Assembly: GCF_902459465.1 (NCBI RefSeq)
Contig: NC_047062.1
Span: forward strand, 23,312,001-23,376,000
Source of the DNA: Asterias rubens
Lineage: Eukaryota
Direction of reading: 5' to 3'
DNA: 64,000 nt
Positions 5,101 through 42,037 of this stretch are shown piece after piece. Position 1 is the first letter of the stretch; every line of letters begins with the position of its first letter. The notes beneath the pieces were generated by a model, which worked only from the letters and a program-made list of their open reading frames with translations, did no database searches and had not been told where the DNA came from. The translations under genes and the position numbers were made by a program.

Positions 5101-8100
5101 CAGAAGATGCTTGGTGGCAGTCTTACATTCTGTCATTGCTCCAAAACTCGAAGTCCTCAAAAAATACGTTCATCCATCAGGCATTATATTATATTCAGGT
5201 TTGCTGCGACCCTCTCACATTCTTATGTAATTACTTGATGAAGCAAGTTGTATTACCTGACCATTTTTCTTAATTTCTTGACTCGTCAGGATTCATGCAG
5301 AGTTTCAACTGAACAAGCCTCCTGAAAACCCCTTCTGGTTTACTCCAGCTCAGTTCACTGGAAACCTAATCATCAGCCGGGACTCATCACACATAGAGCA
5401 CTTCCATCTCTATGTACCCTGTAACAGGAGTCTCAATGTGGGTAAGAACAATCTTCTTGAAGAAAAGGTCTTCAAAAGCCAAGCTTCTTAATGTACATGC
5501 AGGCCTGTATGCTTCGTTTGTGTTTTTGTTTTCGATGCATATTGACCCCTTGCACGCCTGCCACATGAGGCAAACTGTGCCACGCTCACCATTTTGGTGG
5601 TCAATAGGTTTACATGTAATCACTGATTCGCCTAAAATGCGCACTTCATTGAATAGTGCACAGAGTGACATTGCCCACCAGTATGGCACATCCAAGATTA
5701 TTCTGATGATGACGTCAGGTGAATTGGGTCAATAAATCAGCTTGTTTGCTAAGCATGTTGTATTGTAAGAATCTCAATTCTCAATTAGGATGCTCAGGTT
5801 GTATGCTTCGTTTTTGAAAGGGCAAGTGCACCAAGGCATTTTCTTCTTGGTTAAGGGTGCCCTATTAGGAGATTGTTAGTTTCTACTGGAGCAATACAAG
5901 GGCAATGCAAGGGGGCGTGTAGGCAATCGCCTTCTTTGTCTCCGTGAAGTATCAGGGCTGTATGTGCACAGCCGCAATCGTGGGTACACATTTCGTGTCC
6001 ATTTTGTGAACAACAGTTAGAAAACCACTGATGTAGCAGTACTCTCGATGTTATTTATTTATAAATTAACAATCGCAGTGTCAATGGTGAATAAACGGGT
6101 TTGAGTTTGTCGAATACAAGATTTGCAAAGAGTTACTCAACATTTATCCAAGGATAAAGCAATAAAGGTTAAGTGTCTTGCCTAAGGAAATAAGTAACTG
6201 GAACCTCATTTTATAGAGCTTATTTATGTTGCCTTCAGTTCATTTATGGTTTCCCCACCATGAAAAGTGTCAAAATCTATAATTTGTTTCCCCTTCTTTT
6301 ACATCCACTTACAAAAAAGACATGGAGTGGATGACCGGCCCTGTGGAGAACGAGAACATGGAGGTGGACATTGGTCACATGCCTCAGATGGAACTGACCG
6401 TCCCGTCCCCGTCCAGCCACATCGCCATGTATGGGGAGAACGGAGAGGTCCTACAGGAGGCCAAGCCACCAGTCCGAGACTTGGAGAATAACAAGATCAC
6501 ATGGAATAGTCAGATCTCCATGGAAGAAGCAGTCAGGATACTAGAGCTGCATTTTTATCCATTCAAATCGGTAAGTTGGGAATTGGTCGACTCTGTAGAT
6601 CAAATATATAGTCTAGGACAGATGTATATGTAGATACTGTATGTCATTCTAAAACTAAATTGTGTGAATTATTTAACAGTTTTATTTATGCTATGCCACT
6701 ATCCAATAACGAAGGAAATATGAATGTTTGTTTTTCTTCATTTAACGTGTTTAGAAAGGCACTGATTTTTGTGAGTAAACTCATGTTAGATGTTAGATGA
6801 AAAATATACAGTGTTACTTAGGTTTATCAAAATATTTCCAAGGTAGGATATCATTGTTTTGTGACAAACTGCACCCCTCCAAAATAAATTATTTTTGCCA
6901 TATTTTGATATCTTAGGTGCCTTATTTGCCCTTCACTGAAGCATTTCAGCGGGCAGCAGCAGAGGAGAAATTGGTGCATTCCATTTTACTCTGGGGATCA
7001 CTGGACGACCAATCCTGCTGAGGTGAGATTCTTAATTTGGAAACCCCCTCTTTTGGTATCTTCATTTGATGCATTGAATGTTCTTAATATAATGCCCAAT
7101 TACTTTTGATTGGTCTTATCAGAAAGTAGAGACTCAAAGCTTAGTTGATTGAAATGAAAACTAACTCTCAAGCATTTTTATCTCACCTGACGCATGGACA
7201 GGCCCCAATATCATGCCTCTGCTTACTGCAAGCAAAGAATCAGGGCTTATGGAAGCAGGGACATCCTTGCTTACGTCAAGCATATTTCACGGGTCAGCAG
7301 GGAATTTCTGCTTGTGCGTGTGCATACTCCCTGTTAGGCTTTCTTCACTTACACAGCTAGCACAGAAATTTGGCGCTTACACAGTAAGCAAAGAATGAAA
7401 ATCGTGAACGCAGAGCCATGGAATTGGGCCTATTTTAAAAGAGATTCGAAGCTTGGCCTATTGAAATGAAATCTCACACATGTCAGGTGTGTTAAGAAGC
7501 CTTCCAAGAGGCTGATTACCAAATTGCAGTCCTCATTTTCTGCCTCTTTATAAGCTGGTCAAAGCCATCTCAACTCAATGGAACTGAACCCGCTCATTGG
7601 TTTTAATGGATGCAGAGAGATTTTTGCAGAAACTGTACCAACATGTGAATAATTTGTTTCCTTAACTGTTTCAATTTGCTCGCCAGGTTCGGGGCGGACT
7701 CTTCGAGAGACGGCTCTCGAGAGTTCGCCCGTTACTCAGCTGCTGGACCAACACTTTGTCAGTAGCTGGTCCCTCATTGCTGATCTTAAGACCTTCAAGG
7801 AGGACACTGACCCTGAGGTCTCCAAACTTGCCACTCTCTGTTTAGATAAATACACGTAAGTTAGAATCCATATCCATAGTATACTAATGCAAGTAACAGG
7901 TCTGTTTGTGTAAGAAAAACTCCCAGGGGTTGATTTTACAAAGAGTTAGGACTAGTCCTGACTTATGACTTGTCCTAGCAGATATTTACAAACTTAAGGC
8001 TCTTCCTAAGTTAGGACGAGTAACTCGTCCTAATTCGAGATAAGACTAGCCTTAACTCTTTGGCAAATCCACCCCAGGTGTCGGTATAGATCGGGCTGCG

Positions 8101-32226: not shown

Positions 32227-35200
32227 ATGGTTGGTATTTATACATTCATTTAATAAAAATAGAAAGTATGAACTCTTTGTTTTGTTTGTCTAAGTATCGC
32301 ACCGAGTTCAAGTGAAAGCTGAAAACAACAAACGAAAAACAAAGCAGCCGCCTCATCCCATGAACTACAAAAATAATGCCGATTTTCTTTTTATAGTTTG
32401 TCGTTAGTGTAGTCATGCAGTTGATTGAAGAGACAAGTCGACCTTTAAAGAATACATTTTGGTTGTTGGAATTGCTCTGGAAACATGATATTTATTTCAG
32501 CAATTGAAGTATAATATATAAATAAAAATAAGAAGTGAAAAAAAGGCCTCAAAAGTAAAAACTTCTTTACTTTAAAATGAAATAATTTTTTTTTAAATAA
32601 AATTCAGTTCAAAATTCCAGATTAAAAAAAAAACCTGCTGGCACCCTGACCTTGACCACACATAGCGACCCCTATGGTTGATTGTGTATATACAAACTAT
32701 TTGATACAGATGCAGTATTTATTTTTTTCAAAATAAGGAAAAGTTTCCCTATGGCGCCACCACTTTTTCATTCGAAATGAAATAATATTGTATCTAATTT
32801 ACCTCAATGAGATATCCCTTTTATTTAGTAAAAATGAGTGAAAAAGTGGTGGCGCCATACGGAAAGTTATCCCAAAATAATAATAGTTTGAATATTCTAA
32901 TTCATGTTCAACATTTCAACAGATCATATTCGTAGAAACAACCATCGCAATTTTGTTGTATATTTACAACAAAGCAATAGGATAATTTATGTAATTTGCT
33001 CCATGCTTTAATGCAGTTAAGGAGGTTGAGTTTGATTGCCAAAGTTCCATGTCGAGTACAATCAAAAGAAAATTAAACAAAAGTAAACTTGAAGAAAGTT
33101 TTGGAAATAAGAATAAAGTAAAGATGACGGACTAGTGAAATGGCAAGCTAACTGGCCCTGTTGGCTAGTCACAGGTAAAAACAAAAAAAATGTTATTGCC
33201 ATTTATTCTTGAGATGCAATTCTTGCCTAAGTTTACCTGCCCACTTACTTCCATTGCTCTTTTTGTCTTTTCCCTCAGGCTCTTCGTGTGTGTGTTACTG
33301 GTGCTGCTGGTCAGATCGCCTATTCCCTGCTGTACTCCATCGCCAAAGGGGATGTGTTCGGAGCTGACCAGGTACAGCATTTTAGGTCTAATATCGAAAT
33401 GCCTACATGAGGCTGACCACCTTGCTACTAATAAATGCATTTATAAGCCCTGGTCTGATAACTCACAGAAGCATTAAATGCAATTAATAATAATAAATAA
33501 TAATAATAATAATAAGACTTGTAATGCGCACATATCCACCCTGCTGGGTGTTCAAGGCGCAGTAAAACCAAAAACAAAACAAAAACAAAACACAACACAA
33601 AGAAAAACAGACACAACAAAATTAGTCATTGAAAACCTGTGACATAAGATAAGTTTTGAGAAGAGACTTGAATTTTGCAGTACAAAGACAAGATCGAAGA
33701 TTAAGTGGTAGAGAGTTCCAGATGCGTGGCACGGCTGAAGAAAAAGACCTGTCACCCCATGAGTGTCGAGACTTGGGTTCAATGAGGAGAAGCATAGAAC
33801 TTGATCGAAGATTCCTTGATGGAGTGTAAACTTGAAGCAGTTCAGAAATATAGTGGGGAGCCTTGCCATTAAGAGCTTTGTCTCAATGTCCCTGGTCATG
33901 GATGGTCTTGGTGCTCCATTACAAATCTATCTTTTCCTCATTGAAGTGCCCTTTTACAAAGGAGAAATTGCCTCAAGTGCCCTTTGAATAGTAAGGCATC
34001 AGGCCTGCATGTATATTAAGGCAACGCCTCTATGGGCCTTTTCACACCAGGGAACTTTTTTTCATAACCAACTGCAGTACATGCTACAGGACCCACTTTG
34101 GTAGCACATGAGTAGTTTTTCAAACGAGGTCTTACGTTTCTCAAGAAAATTATGTGAACATTCAAATGTGAGTGGTGGTCTCTTCTTGGAGACTGCCTGG
34201 AACTGGATGCCTGTACATTGCCTTGTGTGTTATGTACCTAAGACTGATACAGTACTTCTACTCTTGCTTTTGACACCTTTGTGATGATTTTTAATAGTGG
34301 AATCAGTAGCATAGTTGACCTTGGACTGAGGACTGCAAGGATAATTGAATGTATTTTTTTATTCCTTAGCAACTGGAGCTTTTGCTGTTGGATATCCCTC
34401 CAATGATGGCAGTGGTTGAGGGCGTGAAGATGGAGCTCAGTGATTGCTCACTTCCACTCCTCAAAGGTAAGACAAAGTGTTGAAATCAGCCGTTAAGATG
34501 TTCATAGTTTGATCTTATCTTGAAGTTCATGTAGGTGGAGTAAGCTGCCCTAAAAAAAACTCAAAACTTTGCATAGTCCTTGTGTAGAAACTCCACCCCT
34601 TACAAGTTATCACATATACTCTGTTGTACCTGGTCCCAATTTTATAGAGCTACTTTAGAACAAAAAGAAGCTAAGCATGTACATATTACGGTTGCAAGAA
34701 TACGGTTGTCGGCAAAAATACCACTTAGATGCACCATGTGTGACTGGTACCCTGCTCATAATATGCTTTGCAAAAAAAATTTCAGCAATATTTTCTGCTT
34801 TAATAAGCAGCTTTATGAAATTAGGCCCTGTAGAGTTTGTTGTTTTCATTTCCCATGGTTTGATGAATGTATAATAAACCAAACATGTTGCCTGTTTGAC
34901 AGATGTTGTAGCAACTGCTGACTACAAGGAAGCTTTCCTAAATGCAGATGTGGCCATCTTGGTCGGTGCCATGCCAAGGAGGGAAGGGATGGAACGCAAA
35001 GACCTCCTTAAGGCCAATGCTAAGATCTTTGAGGGTCAAGGCAAGGCTATAAACGACTATGCCAAGAAAACCATCAAGGTATTGCACTCGCCACAAGTTG
35101 TCAAATTTTACCTATTAACCCTAAATTGGCCCACTAAATTTAGTTTTTTCCCGGATGCTTGGTGTAAGAAATTTGGTAACCAGGTGACAAGATGGTAACA

Positions 35201-38200
35201 AGGTACTGGCAAGGAATTAATTTGTTTCTGTAAAAAAAAGTTGTAGTGCTGAAAAGAACCAGTATTTTAGGTTTGTCTCGTTGCCGATCCTTTATCAAAT
35301 TGACATTTTTAAAATTTTATTTTGTACACCTCATGTCTGCCATAATGATCAGTGCAAATAAATTCAAATGCCGCTTGTTCTGAAGTGCATGTTCTACAGT
35401 CTTATGCCATTCTTTAAAGATGGGTGACAAAATGTGGAAGTTTCCCATTAACATTCCTGTAAAACCAAAAGAATGACTCGTCATTTCTTCATTCAGGTCC
35501 TTGTTGTAGGCAACCCAGCCAACACTAACTGTCTGATCACCAAGACATGTGCACCATCAATCCCTGCCGCCAACTTCTCCTGCCTCACTCGCCTGGACCA
35601 AAACAGGGCTCAATATCAGGTAAGTTAGTTTACATGTTGCACAGGAGATGATGTTTAGTATGGTTTAGAGGGGTGTTTGTTTAACCCTTTAGACACTATG
35701 ACCCTTTTCGAAACCACAGCTTCAGTTTTGGATTCGACTTCAGGATCCAACCTCTCGTCTGAAGCCCTGAGCACGTACGCAAAGCACACGCAGTTGTCAA
35801 AACGACCGCCTATAATGGCAGGAAATGGGTTGTACCAAAATGCCCATAGAAAAGTTGGGAAGGAAGTGCATTTTGCTCTACTAGCAAGGATGATAGTGGA
35901 TGATATCCATACTTATACCCTTACAGACTGTTAAGTGGGTAACCCCGTTTCAGCCCCAGGAGTACTAGGCAACGTGCCCCTTTGGGCAGTTGGTTTGGTT
36001 TGATACAAAATCGGTTAGAAGTGTAGCCCTCACCATGATGTGGCTGTCTGGTCTTGTGATGTTAGATGATCTCTCAAAATAATTCTTTTTTTAAATGGCT
36101 GGAAGATTTGCGAAAGTAGTTTAGGGTATCATCGTAAGAACACGTGTGGGAAAAGTGGATGGAAAGAAAGATAACATCCTTTTATAAACCCTTACCCTCA
36201 CAAATCCTACAACATACCTCTTTGCCAAAATGAAGGATTCAGAAGGACTTGGGGCTTTTTGCTTAAATAACAAATTTCTTATCACTGAGTTGGGCATTCC
36301 AATCTTATCCAAGTCCAAAATTTTTAGTGTTGTGACACGGAAGAGGAGAATTTTTGAGGACTTGGGTCGCCTGTAGGCAAGTGGGCATAGGGAGTTAGGG
36401 TTGATCTGCAATTACCAAAACTTTGGCTTTTTGCTGTTGGTAACTTTGTTCAATCATCTGGATTACTCTTTAAATGCCCTTTTCTATTGAAGGACATTGA
36501 ACCAAAAACATTGCTTGTGTATTCGCCATGTCCATATGACAATTTAAACCTTTGTCGCTTTTTCCCCCTGAAGGTGGCCAACAGGGTTGGTGTTCCCTGT
36601 GACAAGGTGCGCAACGTCATCATCTGGGGTAACCACTCCGCTACGCAGTTCCCCGATGTCAGCCAAGCTGTAGTGGTCACCAACGAGCGAACACCAGTCT
36701 ATGCTGCCGTTAAGGACGATGCCTGGCTCAAGGGAGACTTCATCTCTGTAAGTTCTTATCTAAAAAGCACAGACTACTTATCTGTAAAATTATTATGTGT
36801 ACGCCCATTCTAAACAAATAAAATCAATTTAGTGGTACACATTATGTTGGAGAGTGAACCAATTTAGTTGTCACAGCAGAGGTGATAATGGAATATAAGT
36901 CTTCATTTCAACTATCATCCCTGCAACTTTAATGATGGACTTTTGGGATGCTAGGTGGCAGCAGACTTACCAAATCGATAGATGTTCGCAAATACTTAGT
37001 ATGTGCACATTAGGCGTGTTATGAGGTGCATGCTGGTCTAGCAAGCGTTCAAGTTTTTATCTCTAGGTAGCTAGACCAGCATGCACCTCATTCAACAGTT
37101 AGCGCTTGCGCAATGGGTATTTGCGAAAAGGTATGTTCGAAAGTCTCCCATTGAGTTGAAATGCCTTCTTTTTTAAAACCTTGCTACATTTTCTCCCCAA
37201 GTTGCTGACAAAATTTTTTTCATTGACCAACGCATTTCTATTTGTCTGCTGAGGACAGCGTGCTTAAAACTGTTGCTATCATTATGTTGTTCATTTATTT
37301 CAACAGACCATACAAACTCGTGGTGCTGCTGTGATTGCTGCTAGGAAGCTGTCCAGTGCAATGTCCGCAGCCAAGGCCATCGGAGATCACATGCGCGATT
37401 GGTGGTTCGGCACCCAGCCGGTGAGTTCAATGGGTTCAACCAGAGGAGTGGGTGGACACCCCATATTGAATTTGTACACCCTTCTTTATCTCTCGTTAAC
37501 TTGTCCAAGCAATGGACACCTTGCATTATGACATCACAAGCTCAAATGCAACCTCTTTCCCATTGATGTATGATCTTTTCATGCCTCCCCCAGCATAACT
37601 TTCTTTTTGATTATAATCCTCTGGGGTGGGTTTTTATGGTAGTTACCAATTTTTCCCCCGATTGAATTGGCCACTGTTTAATCACTGGCCACTGATCAAA
37701 ACAAATATTGGGTACAGCTTTGAAAACGCACTCCTGAATTATTGCTAAATAAGCAAATAAATGGCGGTGTTGAACAAGGCCTTTGATAATTGATAGTTGT
37801 TGGCTATTATGCAAGATTCAAGCTCATTGGCATAAAACCAACAGTTGATATGTATAATTTGTGACTACTGGGTTCACTTGCTATTGTTATGCACATATTT
37901 TTGCTTTGGTCCCATAAGATTAAGGCAATGACTCCCTTCTTTTTGGATAGAAATTTCAAGACATATGGAACAATAATAAGTCCAATATTTTTTATTTGTT
38001 TTTACATTGTAGGATTTGAAATTTGATTAGTCTGCATTGTGTTGAACTAATTAGCGTTTTGAGGTATGGTGGGCACTATAGGAGTGCATTGTTTGGTTTG
38101 GATGTATACAGACAAATTTAACCAAACCACGTAGTGTCATTGTAAACTGTGTCCACCATATCTTAAAATGGCCTATAACGTGGTATGAAAAAACATGTAT

Positions 38201-38451
38201 CGCCGTCCCTTTTATCATTGCACGATATTTGCCCATTACAGGATGAGTGGGTTTCAATGGGTGTATTCAGCGACGGCTCATACGGAATCCCAGAAGGTCT
38301 CATCTACAGCTACCCAGTCAAGATCAGCGGCAAAGAGTGGTCTATCGTCCAGGGTATGGAGATCAGCGACTTTGCCCGGGAGAAAATGGACGCCACGGCT
38401 AAGGAGCTGATGGAGGAGAAAGAGGCTGCATTGTCTTTCCTCGGCCAATGA
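32227..38451 (+). CDS. MDH1: Cytosolic malate dehydrogenase; exons 32227-32229 (ATG only, tentative), 33279-33371, 34370-34466, 34903-35078, 35497-35619, 36574-36747, 37307-37420, 38242-38451 (329 aa)
   Basis: [109 protein letters not shown]. The first exon is inferred from aaacATG|gttggt in phase 0. Confidence 0.96.
32741..32868. mobile_element. Palindromic MITE of about 128 bp (second copy 42209-42332; degraded copy about 18725-18870)
   Basis: TIR tttcc.tatggcgccaccactttttca / tgaaaaagtggtggcgccatacggaaa. Confidence 0.75.
33482..33890 (-). mobile_element. 3' end of an L2-type LINE (ORF2 C-terminus plus (TAT)n tail)
   Basis: The minus strand reads [28 protein letters not shown]...[17 protein letters not shown]...FKSLLKTYL, then gcgcattacaagtc(tat)n. 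Confidence 0.8.
34633..34827. mobile_element. Harbinger/PIF-like MITE family 2 (CTG TSD)
   Basis: CTG|GTCCCAATTTTATAGAGC...GCTTTATGAAATTAGGCC|CTG. Confidence 0.7.
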
Positions 38452-38472
38452 CTCCAACAATCACAACTGTGA
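38449..38472 (+). other. Putative stop-codon readthrough extension of MDH1 (X-L-Q-Q-S-Q-L-stop) ending in the PTS1-like tripeptide SQL
   Basis: TGA CTC CAA CAA TCA CAA CTG TGA. Confidence 0.6.
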
Positions 38473-41400
38473 AGAAAACACTGCGTACTACTTGTTTAAT
38501 TCCCTATCCCTTCCCCCTCCCCCCTTCTCAGATGATTTGGAAATTGCGGTCTGCCTCCACATAAGCTGGAAAGAGCTAGATATATTTTCATTCTTTGATT
38601 GCAGAAACAACTCTTTCCTTCTGAAATTAGAAAAAAGCATAAAGAGGATTTCTCACTCTCATTTGTGGGGGCATCCTGCACTTTGATTGTAAATTTGAGG
38701 ATAGATTACTTGTGTACTAAAGAAACATTTTGAATGATAAAATGATTGACAGTTTATAATCTAAAAGCATGATATTCTTCCTACTGTAGTCTGATTACCG
38801 ATTTAGCTCAAATATAGCTGAACATAAATTGGCAATAACCATGATATAAACAAAGATTTAGTGGAAGATAAAGATAGTATTTTTTAGAGATAGTACTTGT
38901 TGATTCTGCTTGAAGTGGTGTTAGGTCAACTCTTGAGAGAAAATGTTTATTGCTTTTCATGGCCAGGCATTCAATCCAATTCAAAGTAGCATTTAGTTTC
39001 ATGAAGAAGACACATTGTGTTTGATAATGCAGTTTAAAAAATCAGGGGTATGTTAAGAAGCAGCCTGTATACAGAACAACAAGAACTAACGACGAAAACC
39101 CAGCAAAACAAAGTTAACCAACCAAACTAAACTGACGCTGGGAATAACATAGTTCAGATACCTGCACAAAGAAAATCACTTCCCTCATAATCTGTGTGAT
39201 GAGTGTAAACTATTGACACAAAAAATAAACTTGATATTTCCGTTCCGATGAAGGTGCTGGTATGCTTGTCTTCATAATATCAATTGATGTGTATTTTAAT
39301 GTATATCAAATGACCTGGTTTATATTTTGCACAGAACCGGGAAATAATAGACCATGGAGAATGCTTGGTCCCATCAATAGCTGTGCACGTTCAGTGTATG
39401 CAAATATGAGGAAACTACAAATAAATATTTTGTATTTATCCACACCATGCAAAGCTTAAATCAATACTTATTTTGGCAAATTCAGTTCTCCCACCATGCA
39501 GACATGACCAACAAATGAGCTCTGCATTCTCTGTGTTTGATTTCTATGGTTCAAGACTTAATGTAATGCTAAAAGTATTATAATGTTCAAATCATCCTAA
39601 AGTTAAAAGTCAACCTCCCCCACCCCTCCCATGTGTTTTCTTACAGTTGTGAACACCATTTGCAGCTTCCTTCCCCACATATCAATGTTTTTTTCTTTTT
39701 CTCTTTTGGGTTATGTCAGTAATGGTGAACGTTTAACTCATCATAATGTCAAGAATGTGACATTTGAGACAACTCAAAAGAAGAAAAGAAAAAACTGATT
39801 TGTATTTTTTTTCTATTTCCTTTGTGGAAAAACTCATGAAAATGTCTCCGATCATCTGAGCAATAATATCCCTTATTAGCATAGGTCAGAAGTGACTTAA
39901 AATGATTTGGTTCCATGGTTGAGATATTAACATTCAAAGAATTATTTTAGTTTTGATTGATGACCATTTGATGTGTACTCTGCAAAGATTGATTTATTGA
40001 TTTGTTAGCTCAGTGACTAATTGATTGGCTGATTATACTCTATTGCTAGGTGGTAGATTTTCAAAGTACCTGTTCTCTGTTGTGTGCTCAAACTCAACAA
40101 GTCAGGCTATGTATGACTTCATCACTGCGGATGTACCTCATCCATGATCTCTTGACAGTGCATCAACTGGGCCATCATCATATTCTCTCTTTAATCATCG
40201 TCAAGCTCTTTCAACATTAAGGGAAAGAATTATTGCACACACAACTCTCCCTGATTCTGCAGGAAGTTCATTGAAAATAAACCAATCTGTCCATGTTCTG
40301 AGGAACAGATTTGACGATCTCCCTGATTATGGAAATTGTGTCCATTTTATGTTGAATGTAATTCTAAATATCTACCTGATTGTTGTAAAAAGTCTCCCAG
40401 ATTGCAAGATACTACGCTAGCTCTATGGTACTACTTGTAATGGCCTAACCCTCACCCATTCTTGTAAGGGCAATTCCTTTTGGTGAAGGGCACTCAACAA
40501 GGAAATTGACATTTGTACTGGAACATTTCATGGGGCACCAAGGGGGCATGGAGGCAGTTGGCAATGTAATTGTTCAATTTTCATACAATATAATTCAAGT
40601 ACATAATTACATTGAAACATTGAGTTTTATATTTAACTTTTATTTAGAAGTTTTATTTAATTTGTTAAGGTCCTTGTTGTCGTATCTCAAGGCATTGAAA
40701 AAAAACCGATGTAACAATTTAGAGAGCAAAACAAAAAATAGCACTTCCTTAAGAGATGTAATCAATATATTTGTGAATTAATTTGTTTATAAAACTTAAC
40801 TATGTCAATTGTGTGCAGTGAAAAGATGCTAATAAAAGTAATAAAATTACTTTAGAAGAATTTCATGTTTGTTGTGTCTTATTTATGTGTTTATGTAATT
40901 GGTTGTTCAAATTTTGAAATAATTCAAACAATATTTACAAGTCACTTGAAGTAGTGAAATGATGTGATCTGGGGAATTTGATAAATTCTACTCTTTTCTG
41001 CGAAAATATTGAACATTTCCACAGGGGAATGGTTTTGGGGATGGGGGATTCCCCATCCAGGTTTTTCTTGTTTAAAAAGTTTGTTTCTAGTTTGAAAAAC
41101 ACAATTTTTCATGTACCAGCGGTTTGATAATCTGACAGTACGATGGCATTGACTATTTCATTATGAACACAATTACCTTAAAAATGAAGCAATGTAGTGA
41201 TATATGAACATTCTCTTATTTTAAAACAATTAATTTAGTGAAACAAAAAGTACGATTAATTGTTATGGCCTTTTATTTTATGAGAAAAGGCCATGTTAAA
41301 TTAATCGTGTTCTATAGAAAAAATGCTTAATAATAACCGAATGCATTAGTAAAAATAAAATAATATATATTTGGGATTGAATATAATTATAACCGTACCA

Positions 41401-42037
41401 GTATATTTTGGTTTTCCAGCATTATTGTTGTCTTTTGGCAAAAGTGACGTAATCATAATTTTTGGACGAGCACAAGATGTATGGTACCTAGTATTCATTG
41501 GTGGTTTGAAACGACAGAATATTCAACGAAGTAATGGTACCATACTAAACAACATCAAAGGCGGGGGGTTGTCGAGTCGTGAACGTGTCAAAATATTGTT
41601 CCGAATCTACGCTGTTTACAACAAAAATAGTAAGTTAAATTTTAATTACTGTACTAATTCTAAGCCCTAACATTAAAACTGCTTAATTTCGCACTCAGTT
41701 GTTTCAGCGATTGAGCTACTAACTAATTTAACAATAAATGCATGCATGTAGCGCAAATGGGCAGTGTATGTAGTGAAAGTGTGATCACTCGCCGCACGTA
41801 CACCACTACAGTACAAATTACAATAAATATCCTTTAGAAAGTGTCCGTTTCCTGCCACCTCGTTTTCATTCTTTATGAACAAAATTGTTATCTTTTTGTT
41901 CAAATGATATTTTATATTGTAACATTTCTTTAGTTTTATTTGTAAAAACATGGGTTGGAAATAAGAAGTAGTGTCAGAATGTGGAAATCTTTTCCTTTTT
42001 TTAAATTTTTTTAAATTTTTTAAATGGTGACAGGATA

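Follow-up and report, generated by a model that had tools for sequence, protein, structure and literature searches.

A predicted peroxisomal readthrough extension of malate dehydrogenase MDH1 in the sea star Asterias rubens and its counterparts in other echinoderms

The gene for cytosolic malate dehydrogenase (MDH1) of the sea star Asterias rubens has an in-frame extension of six codons behind its stop codon, and we rate it as likely (about 0.8) that these codons are a selected readthrough extension whose end, SQL, would act as a type-1 signal for targeting to peroxisomes (PTS1). From the sequence and its comparison with relatives we infer, for this animal, readthrough and its rate, the residue inserted at the UGA, PEX5 binding and import. 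The gene lies in a stretch of 64,000 nt of contig NC_047062.1 (positions 23,312,001 to 23,376,000, forward strand), called the window below, whose own coordinates are used throughout. A preliminary description of the window had read TGA CTC CAA CAA TCA CAA CTG TGA at 38449-38472, after the MDH1 open reading frame, and both the letters and the coordinates were exact. The alignment of post-stop sequences that it proposed bore the idea out for echinoderms at the level of sequence: in their orthologues UGA-C is followed, in frame, by a conserved extension that closes with a PTS1-like tripeptide.

Results

The MDH1 gene and its transcript

Seven coding exons on the forward strand (33279-38451) join to 328 residues without a stop. 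The first, 33279-33371, is supported by the identity of the joined protein with MDH1 of Asterias amurensis, and those at 34370-34466, 34903-35078 and 35497-35619 follow from exon joining. The exon at 36574-36747 is tied to the next by a junction (36747 to 37307) seen in RNA contigs and reads, the exon at 37307-37420 to the last by an RNA junction (37420 to 38242), and both introns, 36748-37306 and 37421-38241, have GT..AG ends. The coding part of the last exon (38242-38448) is covered by RNA contigs and encodes the Pfam domain Ldh_1_C; Ldh_1_N and Ldh_1_C are both present on MDH1 orthologues. The A. amurensis protein begins with MALRVCVT, and only the MDH1 ATG is expected in an exon upstream of 33279, outside the seven joined here. 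The joined protein is 99.7% identical to the NCBI entry "malate dehydrogenase, cytoplasmic-like [Asterias amurensis]". Against MDH1 of other animals its identity is ~85% for Patiria miniata and Acanthaster planci, 70-73% for the crinoid, the urchin, the brittle star, hemichordate and amphioxus, and 67-70% for vertebrates. Judged by the first and the last of these figures, the gene is the MDH1 orthologue, predicted to encode the cytosolic NAD-dependent malate dehydrogenase, and the preliminary description had named its host gene correctly.

Mature mRNA retains the extension, since RNA contigs cover the sequence from 38241 onward continuously. One of these, a 3447-nt contig from the window's own species, contains two upstream exons, continues through 38241-40400 with 1 mismatch and runs further; on such RNA the 3' UTR occupies 38473-40400 and beyond, and its length exceeds 2 kb. 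A close relative (organism B) has a transcript of the same structure, as its contig and its raw RNA reads both show, and none of the differences listed for B falls within 38449-38472. No splicing in or near the extension was seen in the RNA contigs of the two organisms or in the raw reads of B. Farther downstream in the MDH1 3' UTR, organism B lacks 91 nt at 38945-39037, with one G in their place (contig and raw reads), and has further small deletions of 2, 3 and 7 nt (39561-39606).

Three intronic or 3' UTR segments of the locus (36936-37203, 38008-38141 and 40152-40400) reached a summed contig depth of hundreds to thousands, and RNA runs from three species gave many matches to them that were partial and diverged; they are probably expressed interspersed repeats. 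As to the neighbourhood of the gene, COX20 lies upstream of MDH1 on the opposite strand, head-to-head with it, in Patiria, Acanthaster and Antedon (L085, L086 and L091), and an opposite-strand COX20 call covers the whole MDH1 locus in the hemichordate Glandiceps (L088). This suggests that the COX20-MDH1 neighbourhood is conserved ambulacrarian synteny. When the window was compared by tblastx with the upstream pieces from Patiria and Acanthaster, no match was found.

The stop codon and its context

The first stop, which we propose to be leaky, is the TGA at 38449-38451, directly preceded by GCA TTG TCT TTC CTC GGC CAA (ALSFLGQ). Its 3' context is CUC C (38452-38455), so that TGA CTC at 38449-38454 provides the C at +4 and the U at +5 of the core readthrough motif UGA-CU (PMC4207609, PMC4132726). 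The longer high-readthrough motif UGA CUA G, known from vertebrate MDH1, OPRL1, AQP4 and others, is not found in the window, where CUC C is without the A and G of CUA-G. The preliminary description had called this a variant context. CUC does stand in place of CUA, but in the definition given by Stiebler et al. (2014; PMC4207609) the core motif is UGA CU rather than CUA. In their experiments UGA followed by CU was sufficient for readthrough in Ustilago and in HeLa cells, and an A at +6 stimulated it further in HeLa cells. In mammalian reporters based on OPRL1 all four CUAG bases matter, and UGA-CUA alone gave ~1.5% readthrough and MDH1 ~3.5% (Loughran et al., PMC4132726). UGA-C had earlier been named as the leakiest stop context; CUC C is weaker than CUA-G in these mammalian assays. 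The Asterias CUC C has neither the critical A and G of CUA-G nor the stimulatory A at +6, and is therefore expected to be less leaky, with lower readthrough than in mammals.

A downstream stimulatory RNA structure was also considered and rejected: none was predicted in the 120-nt stretch from the stop codon, where the minimum free energy was no better than that of shuffled sequences (z = 0.16). About 30-60 nt past the second stop, at 38500-38530, lies a C-rich pyrimidine tract, ttccctatcccttccccctccccccttctc, and in Patiria a similar run of C lies equally far downstream; the tract may be a 3' UTR element of the type bound by poly(C)-binding proteins.

Could the UGA instead encode selenocysteine, the extension being part of the standard protein? 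We give this next to no credence: MDH1 is not a known selenoprotein, the orthologue of the hemichordate Glandiceps stops with TAA, and a UGA-C context fits near-cognate readthrough. An Rfam scan of 38200-41500 at E<=1 found no SECIS element and no family at gathering level, only sub-threshold miRNA and snoRNA noise, and the selenocysteine reading was rejected on the lack of a SECIS in that interval (the 3' UTR runs beyond 41500).

The putative targeting signal and its chance level

Behind the first stop, 38452-38469 on the forward strand reads CTC CAA CAA TCA CAA CTG, a putative readthrough extension L-Q-Q-S-Q-L, and the second in-frame stop, TGA at 38470-38472, places SQL (codons 38461-38469) at the C-terminus. 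LQQSQL fits the broad PTS1 consensus [ASCNPHTG][RKHQNSL][LMIVF], which Kamoshita et al. (PMC8919083) applied following Lametschwandtner 1998 and Neuberger 2003, and fails the canonical [SAC][KRH][LM]. SQL, with its Q at position -2, has been described as a weak PTS1 (PMC8919083), and no basic residue precedes it in the Asterias extension; a related contig discussed below (L002) has a K at -4. The tripeptide had been presented as a working PTS1, and the broad consensus accommodates it, but only as a putative weak signal outside the canonical pattern.

As background we used 7174 stop-to-next-stop open reading frames from both strands of the window. Their ends match the broad consensus in 5.0% of cases (6.5% behind TGA-C), [SACP][KRHQN]L in 0.4% and the canonical pattern in 0.28%. 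The caveat in the preliminary description that a PTS1-like tripeptide can arise by chance was therefore justified: at 5.0% a single SQL is not significant by itself, and any significance has to come from conservation across species. These rates are also an argument for reading the six codons as ordinary 3' UTR, with an accidental SQL and an extended protein that is irrelevant to the animal; that SQL is non-canonical, and that the extension is known from sequence and mRNA, speaks for this as well. What speaks against it is found in the relatives.

The sea star extension evolves like coding sequence

Orthologous last exons were collected by searching with the last exon alone (open reading frame-like calls on metagenome contigs) and by a second route via full-length named proteins. 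The metagenome scan with the last exon returned 80 loci, mostly bacterial or protist malate dehydrogenases with unrelated sequence downstream; about 10 were animal-like and are treated as side evidence. Several of the relatives are represented by contigs from metagenomes or transcriptomes, and the sea star lineages do not count as independent of one another.

Set beside the TGA CTC CAA CAA TCA CAA CTG TGA (LQQSQL) of Asterias, Patiria miniata has TGA CTG GCT CAA TCC CAA CTG TAA (LAQSQL) and a TARA contig (L001, exon 81% identical) has TGA CTG GCC CAG TCG CAG CTG TAA, again LAQSQL. In L002/L003 (exon 86% identical) the sequence is TGA CTG GCC AAG TCC CAA CTG TGA (LAKSQL), and in Acanthaster planci TGA CTG GCC CAG CCC AAA CTG TGA (LAQPKL). 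Five sea star lineages thus share UGA-CU, an extension of exactly six codons and the second stop behind it. At its unchanged position this second stop is TGA in some lineages and TAA in others; the alignment has no gap within the 24 bases and opens gaps immediately after the second stop. Synonymous turnover affects the serine (TCA, TCC, TCG), the glutamines (CAA, CAG) and the first leucine (CTC, CTG), so that SQL is kept in Patiria, L001 and L002 by synonymous codons, and in Acanthaster two positions of the tripeptide have changed, SQL to PKL, which is still PTS1-like. When all ten pairwise comparisons are added up, codon positions 1, 2 and 3 of the extension are identical in 44/60, 56/60 and 32/60 cases (0.73, 0.93 and 0.53), and the corresponding values for the 192 nt of coding sequence before the stop are about 0.85, 0.90 and 0.61. 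Taken together, the codon periodicity, the synonymous turnover, the fixed second stop and the placement of the gaps show, within the limits of sequence comparison, that the sea star extension is under purifying selection at the protein level and evolves like coding sequence.

An accidental SQL in ordinary 3' UTR is hard to reconcile with this pattern. Synonymous sites between these sea stars are ~40-45% diverged, and yet length, frame, second stop and the terminal S-Q-L have been kept across sea stars, with substitutions concentrated at third codon positions. The same data bear on a second alternative, in which the 24 bases are kept as RNA, for instance as a protein or miRNA site or as a termination context. 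Some similarity does extend a few bases past the second stop (AGAAAA or AGGAAA, then ...AAACACA, in three lineages), and a C-rich tract lies downstream in several species. Constraint on nucleotides, however, should not leave position 2 at 0.93 and position 3 at 0.53, and the synonymous serine, glutamine and stop changes are the opposite of what it predicts. There is in addition no predicted structure and no Rfam match, and in other classes unrelated nucleotides still encode a PTS1-like end. We therefore regard a non-coding element as highly improbable.

PTS1-like ends behind UGA-C in other echinoderms and in amphioxus

Outside the sea stars the extensions have other lengths and sequences and are not alignable by eye to the sea star one. 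The urchin Diadema setosum has TGA CAACCA (L087, 13767-13775) and an extension of 15 codons, QPGSGKSPNTAQSRL, that ends in AQSRL; an urchin-like transcript (L021) shares TGA CAACCA and encodes QPARGKSTSKTQANL, ending in ANL. Behind TGA CTC the brittle star Amphiura filiformis encodes LCQAGGQSRL, and behind TGA CAA the crinoid Antedon mediterranea encodes QFGPQQAKL. Two contigs (L004 and L090, 71-72% identical) have TGA CTG and LV(V/G)RCKL, a third (L093) has TGA CTC and LLAGEGTEVSKL, ending in VSKL, and the amphioxus Branchiostoma belcheri has TGA CTA and LHDTWKKHKL, each closed by a stop. The first stop is invariably UGA, and followed by C, in 12/12 ambulacrarian and amphioxus orthologues with an extension. 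All 12 extensions end within the broad consensus, 11/12 in [SACP][KRHQN]L and 6/12 in the canonical pattern, while the two other frames at the same loci, read as off-frame controls, gave the broad consensus in 3/24. The comparison shows that a PTS1-like end behind UGA-C has been kept, at the level of sequence, in amphioxus and in each of the four echinoderm classes that were sampled.

Seven extension types that differ in length and sequence can be told apart among these orthologues, and each matches at a background of 5% or less, which would give P < 1e-9 if they were independent. Urchin, brittle star, crinoid and amphioxus, different as they are, all end PTS1-like, and together with the sea star pattern this makes an accidental tripeptide in ordinary 3' UTR even less credible than a non-coding element. 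A further possibility is that the tail is translated and selected for a role that does not involve PEX5, such as stability control, or is just a short stretch that does no harm behind a leaky stop. Both SQL and PKL count as weak or fall outside the canonical pattern, echinoderm import is a prediction, and short tails after a leaky stop could be favoured to limit damage. A damage-limiting tail, however, needs no specific tripeptide, and yet 11/12 have the restricted [SACP][KRHQN]L end, with the prototypes SKL, SRL and AKL among them; experiments have placed vertebrate MDH1x, with CRL or SRL, in peroxisomes (PMC5133446), and the hemichordates, described next, have ANL on the main open reading frame. 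Such a role seems unlikely to us, and a selected PTS1 extension remains our preferred reading.

In the hemichordates Glandiceps talaboti (L088, stop at 7445) and Ptychodera flava (P0409) the normal reading frame itself ends in ...SSEANL and ...SADANL, respectively, with no UGA; the Glandiceps stop is TAA. Here a weak PTS1-like end, ANL, is fixed on the main protein itself, and the same need seems to be met in another way. The proposed extension of the alignment to hemichordates and amphioxus thus gave a divided result, with HKL behind UGA CUA in amphioxus but no UGA in hemichordates.

The stop context varies too. Only amphioxus (CUA C) and corals (CUA G) come near the full motif, the crinoid has UGA CAAUUU, and the urchin UGA CAACCA of Diadema and L021 is an exact match to CARYYA, a plant-virus motif that has been tested behind UGA (PMC4132726); UGA CUC of the window does not match it. 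Since the urchin sequence matches CARYYA, the type of leaky context also turns over between echinoderm classes.

MDH1 tails beyond the deuterostomes

Coral-type last exons, whose encoded C-termini are identical to proteins of Oculina patagonica (...ESCQSFLE) or Porites (...ESCDSFMQE), have TGA CTA G and then LASSRL or LVSSRL. Other marine eukaryote contigs carry the tails LFSSQL, QYLSNL, LAPNSNL, LSTHSPKL and LPNEAKL. At the bacterial malate dehydrogenase loci from the same scan, judged by eye, nothing similar was found downstream. In seven proteins called on marine contigs (P0014, P0017, P0021, P0038, P0044, P0047 and P0105) the MDH1 UGA had been rendered as W, apparently under an alternative genetic code, and hidden tails became visible in such calls (...FLE-W-LASSRL-W..., ...ICKQ-W-LPSRL and ...ACQN-W-HPTANL). 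Database gene calls with UGA as W are a convenient source for mining readthrough tails.

Discussion

In the mechanism that we propose, UGA stands in the weak termination context UGA CU, and a small fraction of ribosomes would decode it with a near-cognate tRNA. These ribosomes would add the residue inserted at the UGA and L-Q-Q-S-Q-L before stopping at the next UGA, and the new C-terminus, SQL, would act as a weak PTS1 read by PEX5. A minor pool of MDH1 would in this way enter peroxisomes, possibly with unextended dimer subunits carried along, and would regenerate NAD+ for beta-oxidation via a malate/oxaloacetate shuttle. As MDH1 is a dimer, such piggyback import is plausible to us. Stiebler et al. 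(PMC4207609) argue that readthrough of ~1% suffices, since peroxisomes occupy no more than 1-2% of cell volume.

The closest known system is vertebrate MDH1x (PMC4207609, PMC5133446), which is the product of the orthologous gene and shares UGA followed by C and U, an in-frame extension that is conserved as protein, a second stop behind which no residue follows the PTS1-type tripeptide, and a presumed role in a peroxisomal NAD+/NADH malate shuttle. The two differ in the tripeptide, CRL or SRL in vertebrates but SQL in Asterias and PKL in Acanthaster, and in the context, an invariant CUA G against CUC C or CUG G in sea stars. They also differ in length, with 19 codons in the human extension as opposed to six in the sea star. 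Among the sequence features that mark MDH1x, Asterias lacks two, the full CUA-G motif and a canonical tripeptide. Both readthrough and import have been measured for the human protein, whereas the echinoderm case is known from sequence: Hofhuis et al. (2016; PMC5133446) found human MDH1 readthrough of ~4%, with Trp and Arg at the UGA, showed that the downstream 50 nt are dispensable, and obtained peroxisomal import with CRL or SRL. In mammalian LDHBx and in Tpi1, Art1 and Rpe1 of Ustilago (PMC4359377; PMC4207609) the leakiness of UGA CU(A) likewise exposes a hidden PTS1 and leads to dual localisation, but these are different enzymes and evolutionarily independent events, and LDHBx is confined to mammals. 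Cnidarian MDH1 (Hydra in Stiebler et al. 2014, corals here) bears another kind of resemblance. The coral tail has six codons and an L-A...S-x-L layout like that of LAQSQL; unlike in the sea star, the signal is the canonical SRL and the context the full CUA-G.

How new the echinoderm sequences are has to be weighed against Stiebler et al. (2014; PMC4207609), who reported that the cryptic MDH1 PTS1 is conserved in animals down to Hydra. The echinoderm sequences add a new member to this known phenomenon, and their novelty is modest, less than the preliminary description implied. Table S2 of that study, which gives the last 12 residues only, covers human, mouse, chicken, Xenopus, C. elegans and Drosophila and contains no echinoderm, although its Figure 4C may show one. 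A full-text search of the literature found no paper on echinoderm MDH1 readthrough. The new points are the six-codon sea star tail with its coral look-alike, the weak SQL and PKL signals, the CUC, CUG and CARYYA contexts, and the hemichordate ANL.

Of the two histories that had been offered, deep ancestry with turnover and convergent invention, the former fits the comparison better, since the feature is present in corals, in amphioxus and in every one of the four echinoderm classes sampled. A more specific and much more speculative version, which we find rather doubtful, is that the six-codon tails of sea stars and corals are orthologous. The ancestral eumetazoan MDH1x would then have been a hexapeptide behind UGA-CU, rebuilt repeatedly in deuterostomes: into 15 codons behind CARYYA in urchins, 9-12 in crinoid and brittle star, a longer extension in vertebrates and a hard-wired ANL in hemichordates. 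If this were true, echinoderms would be a natural series for the co-evolution of stop context and signal strength, with weak SQL behind CUC or CUG set against strong SRL or AKL behind CAA or CUC, and with the change from SQL to PKL in Acanthaster as a further example.

Genome annotators can take the results as grounds for including a readthrough isoform in echinoderm MDH1 models. Sea star and urchin embryos can be injected and offer an easy system for studying readthrough of UGA-CUC and UGA-CUG outside mammals; the same system could tell whether weak signals of the SQL type suffice for dimeric cargo. No new mechanism is revealed. Altogether, the findings would extend MDH1x, a textbook case of functional readthrough, to echinoderms, in named species and four classes, and suggest that over hundreds of millions of years its targeting function has persisted through turnover of length, tripeptide and even the type of leaky context.
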